Assembly: GCA_020184695.1 (NCBI GenBank)
Contig: JAANOX010000048.1
Coordinates: 24,598 to 88,597 of the forward strand
Source of the DNA: Histomonas meleagridis 2922-C6/04-290x
Lineage: Eukaryota; Protista; Parabasalia
Direction: 5' to 3'
DNA length: 64,000 nucleotides
The first letter of the stretch is position 1. Each line of letters begins with the position of its first letter. A program made the position numbers and the translations under genes. The notes below the pieces were generated by a model. The model had not been told where the DNA came from. It searched no databases and saw only the letters and a program-made list of their open reading frames with translations. Positions 57,936-63,124 of the stretch are shown in pieces.

Positions 57936-60689
57936 ATGGAAGAAACAAATGATTTAGCAAATACAGATATAGAAAATCATCCAGCTATTGCAAAATTAAA
58001 TCAACTCTTAGATTCAGGCCAAATTACAAAGGATATATATGATAATTTAAATTTTAAATTTCAAAAATTACATCAAGCATTTTCACAATCATGTATGACA
58101 GAACAAATTTTACTTAGGAGAACTCGCGATCTTAATAAAGAACTTAAAGCTCAAAAAATGACTATTGAAGATTCAACATCACAACAACAAGATCATCATG
58201 CAACTCTTACTTTGCTTCGTCAACTTGTTACAAATGCGCAGACAGAACTTGATGCTGCCAAAGAACAAATCGAATCCATTAGAGCTAATACAGCACTTAA
58301 AAAAAAAGAAAGGGATAAATTAATTGAGAAAGTTGCACAAGCTAAAGAAGATCAAAGTCTTAAACTTGAACCTCTTAAACTTCAAATATCTAATGAAGTC
58401 CAAGCATTAGAAGAATCAATCAAAGAAAAGACGCAAACAGTAAATAATCTTAAAAATACATCACAAAGTATTGCAAATAGACTTCAAATTTGTGAAGAAC
58501 AAATTGCAGATATTGAATCAAAGAAAAAAGTTGCCAATCAAAAGATGTTAGAAATTGGTTCAATTCCAATTAAAACGCGACAAAAAGTTTTTGTAGTTGA
58601 ATCATCACATAATTCTCTTTTATCAGAAGAAAAATCAATTGTCGAACAACTTAATTCAACTGAAACTACACTTACGCATTTACATTCACAATCACTTGAA
58701 TTAGAAACAGAATATCAAAACATATCAAATGAAATAGAACAAATGATAAAAGTTGTAAACAATATCAAATTAAAAAACGAAGAAATCCGTCAACTTAATG
58801 AAGAACAAAATAATATTAAACAACAAAAAGAATATGAAGTTCATCAAGTTATTAAACTTGTAAATGAACAAAATAGTGAAATTACAACACTTGAACAAAA
58901 ATTAGAAACAATTGAAAAAGATATAAATAAAAAAGAAAAAGAAAAACATCGAATTGAAGAAGCAATTACAAAACTTCAAATCGACACAAAAAATTTAAAT
59001 TCACAACTTGATGCATTAAAAACCGAAGAACAAAAAGAAGAATTAAATAATTCTCAATTAAAAACACAACTCGATAAAAGCATTGAAGCAAAAGAATCAG
59101 CATTAAGAGCCGTATTATCAGTTAAAAACATTAACGAGAAAATTTTAGAAGAAATTAAATCGGCTTTAATAGAAAGGAATCGTAAACAAACTATACATGA
59201 TGAATTAGCTAAGAAAGAACATGAACTACAATTACAATTAACAGAAATGTCTTTAATCCGTGATAGAAAAGCACGTGAAACAGCATCAATGAAAAAGAAA
59301 ACAATTGATACAAAGGCTTTAGCTATGGAAAGAAATCTCGACTTAATGGATCTCCATCGAAAACAAGAACAAAATTCACAAAAACTTAAGGATTGTTCTG
59401 AGTTATATGAAAAAGCTAAAATCGATCGAAACAAAAACTTAAATCATATTCAATCATCTCGACAATATATTGTTGAGTATAAAGAAAAAATTCGAATTCT
59501 TGAAAATGAAGTTGATTTTTTACGGAATGAATTTGAACAAGTTGATGCATCTGTTAAATTACAAAAGAATTCTCTTTTGGAAGCATTAACACGAAGAGAT
59601 TCAACAAAATCGGATTTGAAAAAAGCGGAAAAACTTTATCAAGAACTTCAATCTAAAATTGATTTACAACATAATGAAATTGAGCGTTTAAATCTCATTT
59701 TACAAAATCGAGAAAATGCTATAACACATCAACAATCAAGATATACAGTACAAGCAGATGATTGTTCTAATATGAGAAGAATGTTAATAGATAAACAAGA
59801 TGAATTATATTTAATACATGAGCAATTTAATCGTCATGAAGAAGTCATGAAAAGAGGCGAAATTGCTTTAAAAGAACGTGAAGAAGAACAAAAATTACTT
59901 TCACTTCAATTAAAAGACTTTGTTCGAAGAATAGAAATTATGCAAAAAAAGATTCCTCAACTTAAAGCTTATGAAAATGAAATATCTGAACTTGAAAAAC
60001 AAATTGTTAAAGAAAGAAGTGAAGTTGAAAAAGTTACAGAAAAACTAGAAATTCCCGATTTAAAGGGCAGAAAGCGTATATATTGTGGAAAAGATTATAC
60101 ACAAAAAGAACTTGATGAGAAGGTAAAACTTTATGAACAAAGAATTAATGAAAAAAGTCAACAAATTTGGGAAAAACAAATTCTACTTAATGATATCGAA
60201 GAAAAAATTAAAGAAATTAAAGAAAATCAACAAAATATCAACACACAAAGATCTTCAAAAACTCATGAAAAAAGTGAAAACTTTAGAGTGGAAACAATGG
60301 CTTTGAGAAGAAAGAAAATGGCTGCACTTGCTGAGTCTGCAATTTATCAGGCTCAAAGTGAAGAATTAAAAGAACAAAAGGAAAATATTAAGGCTGAAAT
60401 AGAAATGGCAGGAAAAAGAACTCAAAAAGGTGAAGCCTTTGATCAATATGCGGAAAAAATGGTTAAAATGCATATTCGAGATGCAAATTCTAGTTTAAGA
60501 GCTAGAACTGCAAACATTGATGGGGATGAATTGGATGAAAAAAGAAACAAAAGACAACACTTTGATGCATATCCTACAGCTGATGGATTGTCAAGGCCTT
60601 ATGGAGCATTCCCTGTATTTCAACCAGCTGAACCTTCTGGACAACTAAGGCATTATAGAAATGAAAATGTTCGACCAATAGAAATATAA
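57936..60689 (+). CDS. CCDC146: Flagellar coiled-coil protein CCDC146/MBO2-like
   Basis: About 900-aa coiled coil ending FDAYPTADGLSRPYGAFPVFQPAEPSGQLRHYRNENVRPIEI, like the CCDC146 tail (PKPYGA..PFKPSEPG.NMRH.RKP..KPVEI). Confidence 0.7.
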   Translation: MEETNDLANTDIENHPAIAKLNQLLDSGQITKDIYDNLNFKFQKLHQAFSQSCMTEQILLRRTRDLNKELKAQKMTIEDSTSQQQDHHATLTLLRQLVTNAQTELDAAKEQIESIRANTALKKKERDKLIEKVAQAKEDQSLKLEPLKLQISNEVQALEESIKEKTQTVNNLKNTSQSIANRLQICEEQIADIESKKKVANQKMLEIGSIPIKTRQKVFVVESSHNSLLSEEKSIVEQLNSTETTLTHLHSQSLELETEYQNISNEIEQMIKVVNNIKLKNEEIRQLNEEQNNIKQQKEYEVHQVIKLVNEQNSEITTLEQKLETIEKDINKKEKEKHRIEEAITKLQIDTKNLNSQLDALKTEEQKEELNNSQLKTQLDKSIEAKESALRAVLSVKNINEKILEEIKSALIERNRKQTIHDELAKKEHELQLQLTEMSLIRDRKARETASMKKKTIDTKALAMERNLDLMDLHRKQEQNSQKLKDCSELYEKAKIDRNKNLNHIQSSRQYIVEYKEKIRILENEVDFLRNEFEQVDASVKLQKNSLLEALTRRDSTKSDLKKAEKLYQELQSKIDLQHNEIERLNLILQNRENAITHQQSRYTVQADDCSNMRRMLIDKQDELYLIHEQFNRHEEVMKRGEIALKEREEEQKLLSLQLKDFVRRIEIMQKKIPQLKAYENEISELEKQIVKERSEVEKVTEKLEIPDLKGRKRIYCGKDYTQKELDEKVKLYEQRINEKSQQIWEKQILLNDIEEKIKEIKENQQNINTQRSSKTHEKSENFRVETMALRRKKMAALAESAIYQAQSEELKEQKENIKAEIEMAGKRTQKGEAFDQYAEKMVKMHIRDANSSLRARTANIDGDELDEKRNKRQHFDAYPTADGLSRPYGAFPVFQPAEPSGQLRHYRNENVRPIEI

Positions 60690-60822
60690 TTAATAATAAA
60701 TATTTTTTTATAAGGAATCAAAAAAGGTGTTTTAGTTCCCATAAAAATTGTTTCATTGTATATTTTGAAAAAGTTCATTTCCTTCATGTGTTGAAATATG
60801 GCAATCGACAAATTCTAACGAA

Positions 60823-60922
60823 ATTGATGTCGTCTAATGGGCAGGGCACGCATTTCTTCCTTTAAATCATTCAAGTTGAATGTTCGAGGAGCGTAATCAA
60901 GGTTCGATTCCTTGCATCAATA
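60823..60922 (+). ncRNA. tRNA-like Pol III gene with a non-canonical 45-nt anticodon domain (isotype unassignable)
   Basis: Acceptor ATTGATG/CATCAAT + A73, D arm GTCT/GGGC, variable TAAT, T arm CAAGG-TTCGATT-CCTTG, A-box- and B-box-like sequences, T7 terminator at 60923-60929. Confidence 0.75.
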
Positions 60923-61046
60923 TTTTTTTGATTTTTTTCTCGTTTTTTTTGTGAATGATAAAAGTTACAAATATTAAGTAAAAATTATAAATAAAAAATA
61001 TATCAAAACGGAAATCAATTTATTTAAATTATTATTAATTCTCTGC

Positions 61047-62072
61047 TTAAGCAAAAGGAGTATTTTTTGTGTTGCAATAATGTATTGAATACGAAATATT
61101 CACTGTGTTACCGACTGATGCAATACCATTACTTGCTACTCCAGTTTCATAATTATTTATATCTACTGAAGCACTGCCTAATGAAACAGAGTTATCAAAG
61201 ACTTCTATTCCAAGTGTATCTTTTCCAACGTTATTAAACTTCATTATTTCAGACCAAACTGGCGATGCGCCCGCAGCATTTTCTGTTTGTCTCGTTTGAC
61301 CTTTATAACTTAAGACACAGTAAGTAGTACTGTTAGCACTGAGACCAGTGGCACTGTTAATGCGTACATTTAATGCATAGACAACGCGTAATTTCCAATA
61401 TATCGTAAAGGCTAAAAGTGCAAGAAGAATTACAACTACTGTCCAAAGAACAAACTTGTTGAAGATAATCCGTCGCAGCATTTTGTTCGCAATGCTTTGT
61501 CCTTTTTTCCCTTCGGTTTGAATATCATCTAAATTACTATTAACATTGTTAAGAATCTTACGATCTTCTTGGAGTGTAGTCATGGTTTGGTCGGCTGTTT
61601 GTTTTGTTTCATTTCCAATTGATATGGCTTGATCAAGATCGTCAAGAATAAGACCTTGCTTATCAAGGTTCTTATGAAGCTGTTGGTTTTGCTTGTAGCC
61701 AGGATCATTTTCCATAGATTGCATTTTCTGGCGAAGATCTGTCATCATCCGATTATATGTGGGCCTTAGATTTTGATTAATTTCTTCAACATAGAAATCA
61801 CGTTCTCCTTCAGGGATAGAGTTACACATGGTTGTAAGTTTCGAAATTTTGGTATTGAGTTGTGAAAGTTTATTTTCTATTGTTCTTCCCAAGTTCTTTT
61901 TTTCATCATAATTAGAACTATTAAATTGTGAGAAATTAGATTGAATACTTTGGATCAATTCTTCAGCTTCATTTAACCCATCATCAAGTTGTTGCAGCAT
62001 TTTTTGGTGTTTGAATTCAAAGCTTTTTGAATTAATACTCAAATATTCAATTAAACGGTTGCGTATTGCCAT
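61047..62072 (-). CDS. VTI1: Vti1-like Qb-SNARE with a C2-like domain C-terminal to the TM anchor
   Basis: Habc-like N-terminus (alternative start MLQQ at 62000), SNARE motif (LDQAISIGNETKQTADQTMTTLQEDRKIL...KMLRRIIFNK), TM (FVLWTVVVILLALLAFTIYW), then VRINSATGL...YCVLSY...RQT...SPVWSE..F...LGIEVFD...LGSASVDI. Confidence 0.8.
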   Translation of the reverse strand: MAIRNRLIEYLSINSKSFEFKHQKMLQQLDDGLNEAEELIQSIQSNFSQFNSSNYDEKKNLGRTIENKLSQLNTKISKLTTMCNSIPEGERDFYVEEINQNLRPTYNRMMTDLRQKMQSMENDPGYKQNQQLHKNLDKQGLILDDLDQAISIGNETKQTADQTMTTLQEDRKILNNVNSNLDDIQTEGKKGQSIANKMLRRIIFNKFVLWTVVVILLALLAFTIYWKLRVVYALNVRINSATGLSANSTTYCVLSYKGQTRQTENAAGASPVWSEIMKFNNVGKDTLGIEVFDNSVSLGSASVDINNYETGVASNGIASVGNTVNISYSIHYCNTKNTPFA

Positions 62073-62431
62073 AATAACTTTTTAAATGAAGTTGTTGTTT
62101 TCGGGTGCCCAGAATATAACCGTCATGCAATTTTGTTTTATAAATGTGATTATTTTACACTTGATATGATATTGCTAGAAAAATTTTATTCGTTAAGTGT
62201 TAAAAAAATACATAATTTTATTCAGCAAAAATTTAAAATACAGTTCAACAATTTGAAATTTAAATATTGTTCACAAATTTAGAACAAGAAAATTAAAATT
62301 AAATTGTGAATTTCATTTATGGTCCTGTTTAGATTTTCATGAATAGCTTAAAAAAAATAAATAATACTTCATGAAATTATAATCAGATCAGACAAAATAA
62401 AGTGAAAGTTACAAATTTGTTTAGAAAGAAA

Positions 62432-63124
62432 TCATATTTCTTGTGATGGAAGTTGGTCCAAAGAAATGTTATTTGACATAAGAGGAAGCTTAGTGTAAAG
62501 TGGTCTTTTGAAGTACCAAATTCCAACAACAATAGCAACAACAGCACATACAAAGAAAGCGATTACACAACCAATGAGAACGCGTTGAGTTTTTTCAACT
62601 TCAGCTTGACTTTGTGATTCTTCAATTTCAGAATTAGCAGCAATTTTACGTGGGCGATAACACACCTTATTTCGCTTGCTCCATTTACATGGGTGAATAC
62701 ACTTATCTTTAGACTTAGCTGATGCACATGTTGATTTCTTGCATTTTGTGGTATTGAAAAGCCAATCTTGTGAAAGACATTTTAGACCAAATGGGCCAGA
62801 AGCATCACCTTCAGCACATATACCGAGACCTTCACACCAGCCACATTGCTTGTTGGCGTCATTTGAAACACATTTTTGGCATCCATCATCTGTGAAAAGG
62901 GTGAAGCAAGTACCAAGGCCACCATGTTTACCTGTCATTGAGTTAGTTGATGGGCATTTCTTTGATGGAGTTCCATCATAATTAAATGCAGAATAGCAAG
63001 AATGAGTTTCTACGCAATATCTACAACCAAGATATGATACGCAAGACTGAGGATCAAAAGAAAACAATGAGCAAACATCTTGATCGACAAAAGCTAAGGA
63101 AAGAACCGAAAACAAAGCAATCAT
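62432..63124 (-). CDS. Cys-rich (PSI-like) single-pass surface/endosomal membrane protein
   Basis: Signal peptide MIALFSVLSLAF, PSI-like C..C.....CGWC....C repeats, TM (VLIGCVIAFFVCAVVAIVVGIWYF), tail with YTKL. Confidence 0.7.
   Translation of the reverse strand: MIALFSVLSLAFVDQDVCSLFSFDPQSCVSYLGCRYCVETHSCYSAFNYDGTPSKKCPSTNSMTGKHGGLGTCFTLFTDDGCQKCVSNDANKQCGWCEGLGICAEGDASGPFGLKCLSQDWLFNTTKCKKSTCASAKSKDKCIHPCKWSKRNKVCYRPRKIAANSEIEESQSQAEVEKTQRVLIGCVIAFFVCAVVAIVVGIWYFKRPLYTKLPLMSNNISLDQLPSQEI

Follow-up and report, generated by a model that had tools for sequence, protein, structure and literature searches.

A Vti1-type SNARE gene of Histomonas meleagridis that continues past its membrane anchor into a predicted C2 domain

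A gene of the parabasalid Histomonas meleagridis encodes, in one uninterrupted reading frame, a Vti1-type SNARE that continues beyond its single transmembrane (TM) helix into a predicted C2 domain, which would lie on the luminal or extracellular side of the membrane. The gene occupies positions 61047..62072 of the minus strand of the window, the stretch of 64,000 nucleotides of contig JAANOX010000048.1 that was analysed here. SNAREs are textbook tail-anchored proteins, and C2 domains are textbook cytosolic membrane-binding modules; the Histomonas protein joins a SNARE and a C2 domain across the bilayer. We are highly confident that the architecture and topology are as read here, i.e. a Vti1 SNARE with one TM helix and a non-cytosolic C2 domain. 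The fuller explanation, which we consider probable, is that an intact Histomonas gene, one of two paralogues, encodes a Vti1 SNARE that has been made a type II protein by the addition, after its TM helix, of a degenerate, Ca2+-independent C2 domain of topology II, which would serve as a luminal handle. The analysis covers two paralogues of one species, and function has been read from sequence and predicted structure.

The open reading frame (ORF), on the minus strand, begins with an ATG at 62072, ends with a TAA (61047-61049) and has no internal stop in its 341 codons, so that the Habc domain, the Qb motif, the TM helix and the C2 domain stand in one frame, as the preliminary description of this DNA had claimed. 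From the base composition, the 115 codons after the TM helix would remain open by chance with a probability of about 1e-4, while the other five frames over the same stretch contain 5-12 stops apiece. The two halves of the gene are alike in GC content (0.336 vs 0.356; GC3, 0.292 vs 0.224). A hidden intron was rejected, because no trichomonad intron 3' motif occurs anywhere in the gene. As to the start codon, an initiator-like TCATTT (62084..62089, minus strand) was read from the sequence, with its A located 15 nt upstream of the first ATG (62072); it fits TCA+1Y(T/A), which we take to be the trichomonad Inr consensus, and its position speaks for M1 rather than M25 or M82 as the start codon. The start of the relatives aligns with M25 of the window protein in the family alignment, and the start of the window protein is thus M1 or M25. 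The public gene model of this locus (P0001, 260 aa; 61047..61829, minus strand) starts at M82 and thereby drops the first two Habc helices. Homology with the paralogue and the relatives extends back to aa 25, and on this sequence comparison the public model is truncated at its N-terminus; the full 341-aa ORF corrects it. Two other ORFs lie close to the gene. The one at 62432-63124 (minus strand) encodes a Cys-rich protein of 230 aa with a hydrophobic N-terminal start and a C-terminal TM; it scores 23.3 bits for PSI (plexin repeat) against a cutoff of 23.1, and looks like a type I surface protein. The other, at 57936-60689 (plus strand), encodes 917 aa rich in Glu, Lys and Gln, is coiled-coil-like by sequence, and has no Pfam match at E <= 0.01. 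Immediately downstream of the SNARE gene, ARAGORN detected no tRNA within 60600-61100.

The cytosolic part of the protein comprises a Habc-type three-helix N-terminal domain at aa 25-121 (61710..62000, minus strand), recognised by PF05008, by the family profile and by single-sequence AF2, and a Qb SNARE motif at aa 144-201 (61470..61643, minus strand), recognised by PF12352 and by the family profile against the Vti1a structure 2nps_C. On the window protein alone, PF05008 scores 24-25 bits, just under its curated cutoff of 25.9, and PF12352 gives an E-value of 1e-3, likewise just below its curated cutoff. PF05008 reaches 36.7 bits on the paralogue (P0002), and it is matched by 20 of 26 relatives. 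When a profile built from the 26 relatives was compared with the PDB, it matched the Habc domain of Vti1a (1vcs_A) with an E-value of 2.7e-10 and the SNARE motif of Vti1a (2nps_C) with an E-value of 8.4e-6; Vti1a ranked best and Vti1b next, followed by SNAP-25 and Sec9 with much weaker scores. By these sequence measures, a Vti1-type Habc domain is present, clearly so at the level of the family and at the borderline for the window sequence alone, and the Vti1-type identity that had been proposed from inspection of the sequence is borne out by the family profile. Single-sequence AF2 predicted helices at aa 2-50, 55-84 and 88-121, with pLDDT values of 80-95 across aa 21-120, and one long helix that spans the SNARE motif and runs into the TM.

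The layer residues of the SNARE motif also speak for a member of this family. Asp170 (codon GAT, 61563..61565, minus strand) is invariant in the 26-sequence family alignment, and it aligns with the Asp of the DRERIQ stretch in Vti1a (2nps_C), which is the 0 layer of that protein; R201 and W210 are invariant as well. Layers +1 to +4 of the window protein are L, V, L and I, matching the tail-anchored relatives, while layers +5 and +6 are Gly; the register of the N-terminal layers is approximate. In both C2-bearing proteins, the layer residues are those of the tail-anchored relatives, which argues that the SNARE motif has not decayed. Taken as sequence evidence, these results support the assignment of the window protein to the Vti1 family of Qb SNAREs. 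The same residues bear on another reading, which we consider unlikely, namely that the protein is a neofunctionalised SNARE derivative in which the Vti1 scaffold no longer drives fusion but forms a coiled-coil stalk in the cytosol, or acts as an inhibitory, non-fusogenic SNARE, and the main job is done by the C2 domain. The Pfam SNARE scores below cutoff, the Gly at layers +5 and +6, the long branch of the window copy (0.8, compared with 0.36 for the paralogue) and the bulky luminal domain found in no other relative would all suit such a protein. However, among the tail-anchored relatives examined, most also have Gly at +5/+6 (with Ala at +5 in some), and their remaining layers match as well; Asp at layer 0, R201 and W210 do not vary in the family, and the full set of Habc domain, motif and TM has been kept in both paralogues.

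The region after the TM is predicted to fold as a C2 beta-sandwich of topology II at aa 230-336 (61065..61385, minus strand), on the grounds of PF00168, AF2, and the Foldseek PDB and ESM Atlas comparisons. PF00168 scores 32.4 bits (cutoff 22) when aa 227-341 are scanned alone, and the match goes unreported when the whole window protein is scanned; the paralogue tail scores 18.5 bits, under the cutoff. Each of the two tails separately matches repeats of multi-C2 proteins, those of two euglenids, Ploeotia and Entosiphon, and of one further contig; in the PDB, the two-tail profile matches C2 domains and nothing else. With a 30-sequence alignment, AF2 predicted eight strands with a pLDDT of 91.6 and a pTM of 0.82, a confidence that depends on the alignment of C2 repeats, which were themselves recruited by sequence similarity to the query; in the single-sequence model, the tail had a pLDDT of about 30, too low to be informative. 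Foldseek returned at least 191 PDB matches at E <= 1e-3 for this model, and all 50 of those listed are C2 domains, headed by C2 proteins of T. vaginalis, cPLA2, Munc13-1 C2B and dysferlin C2A. The structure search of the ESM Atlas found PF00168 in nine of the ten rows listed, with a best TM-score of 0.90 to a phospholipase A2 C2 domain. The stretch LxVxVxxAxGL, starting at about aa 231 and thus four to five residues beyond the TM, forms the first strand of the domain, which indicates topology II; the best match to the cPLA2 C2 domain agrees with this. The C2 fold that the preliminary description had seen in the strand patterns after the TM is therefore what the profile and the structure comparisons predict as well.

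The tail resembles the C2 domains of topology II (the C2 domain of cPLA2, Munc13-1 C2B, dysferlin C2A, and the single C2 proteins of T. vaginalis, 9zk0/9bky) in having eight strands that follow one another in the order seen there, together with the motifs P-x-W-N/S-E and K/Q-T, and the model superimposes on them with TM-scores of 0.77-0.90. Those domains, on the other hand, are cytosolic, and mostly bind Ca2+ or lipid via loops 1 and 3, whereas the Histomonas domain has a shortened loop 1, has lost four of the five Asp, and would be placed outside the cytosol. When the tails were aligned with 28 C2 repeats, one of the five Ca2+-ligand Asp of loops 1 and 3 proved to be retained in the window protein, and none or one in the paralogue, in agreement with the earlier remark that most of them are missing. 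Alignment with the C2 repeats further showed that loop 1 of the tail is seven residues shorter and that the polybasic cluster (groove) of strands 3-4 is absent. Both canonical determinants of lipid binding by C2 domains are thus missing from the tail, the Ca2+ ligands mostly and the polybasic groove altogether, and the tail is predicted from the models to be a degenerate C2 fold, an eight-stranded antiparallel sandwich. The preliminary suggestion that the SNARE senses lipids or cargo in the lumen goes further than these features support.

These features weigh against another reading, in which the domain is a Ca2+-independent, lipid-handling C2 in the lumen that influences hemifusion or the opening of the pore, or that holds internal vesicles or ingested membranes to the limiting membrane. 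It is true that most C2 domains are membrane-binding modules, that the domain sits a few residues from the bilayer, and that the closest structural matches listed include the lipid-binding C2 domains of cPLA2, dysferlin and Munc13. Yet the loss of ligands, the shorter loop 1 and the lack of a basic cluster remove the usual means of lipid binding, and topology II would turn the loop tip away from the protein's own membrane, so that we regard a lipid-handling domain as quite improbable.

The placement of the tail depends on the membrane anchor. Hydropathy and flanking charges define a single TM helix at aa 207-226 (61395..61454, minus strand); the KD19 maximum of 2.65 falls on these residues, and the best value elsewhere in the protein is 0.83, leaving one hydrophobic span, so that the second TM that was looked for is not there. 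Lys and Arg make up 6 of the 18 residues on the N-terminal flank and 3 of the 18 on the C-terminal flank. The 115-aa tail begins three residues past the helix, where the relatives have a median tail of about 7 residues. Tail-anchored proteins have their TM within ~30-40 residues of the C-terminus; here 115 residues follow it, which puts the protein outside that class, as had been noted. Since there is one TM, the charge bias obeys the positive-inside rule, and the tail-anchored relatives have their N-terminus in the cytosol, the C2 tail would lie on the luminal or extracellular side, as the preliminary description had it. The two sequons that it pointed out in the tail, NST (N247) and NIS (N325), are present; they are no denser there than in the cytosolic part (2 in the 115-aa tail vs 3 in the 204-aa cytosolic part), and they were accordingly dropped as support for a luminal side. 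No Cys pair conserved between the two paralogues was found, although a luminal domain might be expected to have one.

That the C2 domain is cytosolic after all, with a hydrophobic stretch that does not span the membrane or is inserted in reverse, appears very unlikely to us, even though C2 domains are almost always cytosolic and neither a conserved disulphide pair nor an enrichment of sequons marks this one as luminal. A span of 20 residues (KD value 2.65) does not have the length needed for a hairpin, the protein has no second hydrophobic segment, the N-terminal side of the TM is the more basic one, reverse insertion would need the translocation of a folded N-terminal part of 200 aa, and in the relatives the homologous TM anchors the C-terminus.

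The gene is present in more than one assembly and has a paralogue. The region of the gene is identical over 3 kb in the H. meleagridis assembly GCA_020186115.1, both SNARE-C2 genes are found on two contigs each in GCA_020186115.1 and GCA_020184695.1, and the contig reported for the window protein is present in 2 samples. The paralogue, P0002, has 322 aa and bears the NCBI annotation 'Vesicle transport v-SNARE protein [Histomonas meleagridis]'. It sits at another locus, with neighbours that differ from those of the window gene, and shows 40% identity to the window protein over aa 25-333 with the same domain order. The tails after the TM are recognisably related on their own (BLASTP E 4e-10), and the junctions from the TM to the first strand, YWKLRVVYALNVRI and YWKFRKVYYLKVRI, are conserved in the pattern YWK[LF]R.VY.L.VRI. 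A paralogue at a separate locus with the same order and the same junction makes an assembly or read-through artefact practically untenable: although the public model of the window gene is itself imperfect in starting at M82, it is hardly credible that a stop codon was lost through an assembly or sequencing error, or that a SNARE gene was wrongly fused with an adjacent C2 gene, in an ORF that is identical on two contigs, is matched in order and junction by a copy elsewhere among other neighbours, and would stay open by chance about 1e-4 times per gene.

The paralogue, as KAH0801133, was listed by mass spectrometry in a surface-enriched fraction of H. meleagridis (PMC9610433 Supplementary Table S2), and this table shows just that the paralogue was detected. 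The columns for molecular weight and number of TMs in that table look mis-sorted relative to the identifiers (e.g. ribosomal protein L32 at 72 kDa, RPB2 at 12.8 kDa and EF-1 alpha with 8 TM), so that its per-protein values are unfit for use. Another proteome paper names a SNARE-domain protein and a C2 protein, neither of which can be linked to the window gene (PMC6250841).

The closest relative of the paralogue, P0112, is 58% identical to it and has no C2 domain; it ends 13 residues past its TM, with 118 bp between its end and the start of the following gene. P0112 (L003:510-1142) comes from a low-coverage metagenome contig, ERZ24773461, perhaps of a close relative of Histomonas. In a tree without P0112, the window gene and P0002 pair with support of 86/94. 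When P0112 is included, the AU test gives p 0.14 for the grouping (window, P0002) and p 0.17 for (P0112, P0002). The simplest reading of these sequences is a single gain of the C2 domain followed by duplication in the Histomonas line; this order of events is not proven, because P0112 has no C2 domain and the branching order of the three is not settled by the trees.

The combination of a SNARE, a TM and a C2 domain appears to be rare in the extreme. In an exhaustive search of 1.84 billion representative proteins, it was found in the two Histomonas proteins only. The search gave 103 matches, nearly all of them SNAREs of 200-235 aa. Among the 99 matches that bear a TM, the tail after it has a median of ~7 residues, and about a third carry 18-70 aa; the 14 longest tails listed are of low complexity in all 14 cases, mostly rich in Pro, Ser and Thr. 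Judged from these sequences, it is not a luminal extension per se that is rare among the Vti1-like relatives but a folded domain. Examples of long tails include P0003, P0021, P0031, P0063, P0072, P0088, P0103 and P0113, the longest being mostly mucin-like; P0113 also carries an N-terminal extension of 77 aa that looks like a mis-called start. In several long tails, the last residues are aromatic or hydrophobic (...LNLF, ...SLLF, ...IPDVF, ...DALFF, ...KFFI), and both Histomonas C2 tails have a Phe two residues before their end; such ends may represent a luminal C-terminal motif, or chance.

Other searches pointed in the same direction. Word-index protein searches returned no match to the full window protein beyond its own product and none to the two-tail alignment; with the paralogue as query they returned the tail-anchored P0112 and P0113 only, and no further SNARE-TM-C2 protein. 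A feature search of the ESM Atlas gave no usable match, and when metagenome DNA was scanned for patterns of the junction and the C2 domain, none of the 132 pattern matches was confirmed. A description of a C2 or other folded domain luminal to a SNARE was not found in the open-access literature. The earlier statement that no equivalent has been described thus holds for that literature and, beyond the paralogue, for the protein libraries searched.

Several known proteins share parts of this architecture. The members of the Vti1 family (Qb.III: Vti1a, Vti1b and yeast Vti1p) likewise have a three-helix Habc domain, a Qb motif and a single TM towards the C-terminus, and mammalian Vti1a has Asp at the 0 layer and provides, with its Habc domain and SNARE motif, the best sequence matches in the PDB. 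Unlike the Histomonas protein, they stop at or just past the TM, where it runs on for 115 residues that are predicted to be folded. Synaptotagmins, E-Syts and ferlins combine a TM and one or more C2 domains with a role in fusion, but they lack a SNARE motif, and relative to the anchor their C2 domains are on the side of the cytosol. A C2 fold working outside the cytosol is known from perforin, the C-terminal C2 domain of which is extracellular, Ca2+-dependent and part of a secreted pore-forming toxin; it is, however, not anchored in a membrane and not linked to a SNARE. SynaptopHluorin, an engineered VAMP2 with a luminal GFP, inserts and cycles; it resembles the Histomonas protein in having a SNARE, a TM and a folded, beta-rich luminal domain, and differs in being artificial and an R-SNARE.

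The length of the tail has a closer natural counterpart. A 2026 survey of SNARE TMs reports that most human SNAREs reach no more than one residue (<=1) beyond the luminal phosphate plane, that Myobrevin has ~22 luminal residues, which are disordered, and that the C-terminal end of VAMP7 is short and curled (PMC13748404). In the same survey, Sec20 of many plants and fungi is described as having more than 100 luminal residues with a K/H/RDEL end (PMC13748404). Sec20 is, like the Histomonas protein, a Qb SNARE with a long luminal stretch past its TM, and its tail shows that SNAREs can be type II rather than tail-anchored proteins. It belongs to another subfamily (Qb.I), however, and acts at the ER, and its tail is described by its K/H/RDEL signal with no folded domain named (PMC13748404). 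This retrieval signal is absent from both Histomonas proteins, the window protein ending in ...NTPFA and the paralogue in ...SETFE. The preliminary description had also assumed that Vti1 SNAREs have almost no luminal part, and this did not stand up, given the tails of 18-70 aa in about one third of the Vti1-like matches and the more than 100 residues of Sec20 (PMC13748404). A long luminal SNARE tail therefore has a precedent in plant and fungal Sec20, and the new element is the folded C2 domain.

According to the explanation that we favour, a type II Vti1 SNARE with a luminal handle, the cytosolic part would still contribute the Qb helix to endosomal, lysosomal or phagosomal SNARE complexes. 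The TM would act as a type II signal anchor with co-translational insertion, because 115 residues follow it. In C2 domains of topology II, the N- and C-termini are at the end of the domain away from the loop tip. The base of the domain would accordingly sit against the luminal leaflet, with the tip directed into the lumen, or outward after exocytic fusion. With four of the five Ca2+ ligands lost and no polybasic groove, the domain would be a luminal protein-binding, sorting or retention handle with greater likelihood than a Ca2+ or lipid sensor; taken by itself, this role of a handle is one that we put forward as a possibility to be held with some doubt.

The protein raises the questions of which route a Vti1 SNARE takes to its compartment once it has left tail-anchor insertion, how a bulky luminal domain is reconciled with the formation of a fusion pore, and what role a C2 fold has when it is off the cytosolic side. 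More speculatively still, it may be the first natural SNARE with a folded binding domain at its non-cytosolic end, so that the fusion machine itself could read events in the lumen or, once exocytic or phagosomal fusion has occurred, at the surface, or be sorted along with them. If this is true, such events would include cargo, ingested material of bacterial or host origin, and the condition of the distal leaflet, and the protein would be a natural test of how heavily the luminal end of a SNARE can be loaded without blocking pore opening. H. meleagridis is a tissue-invasive parasite of poultry, and the C2 part may be exposed at the surface of its cell.
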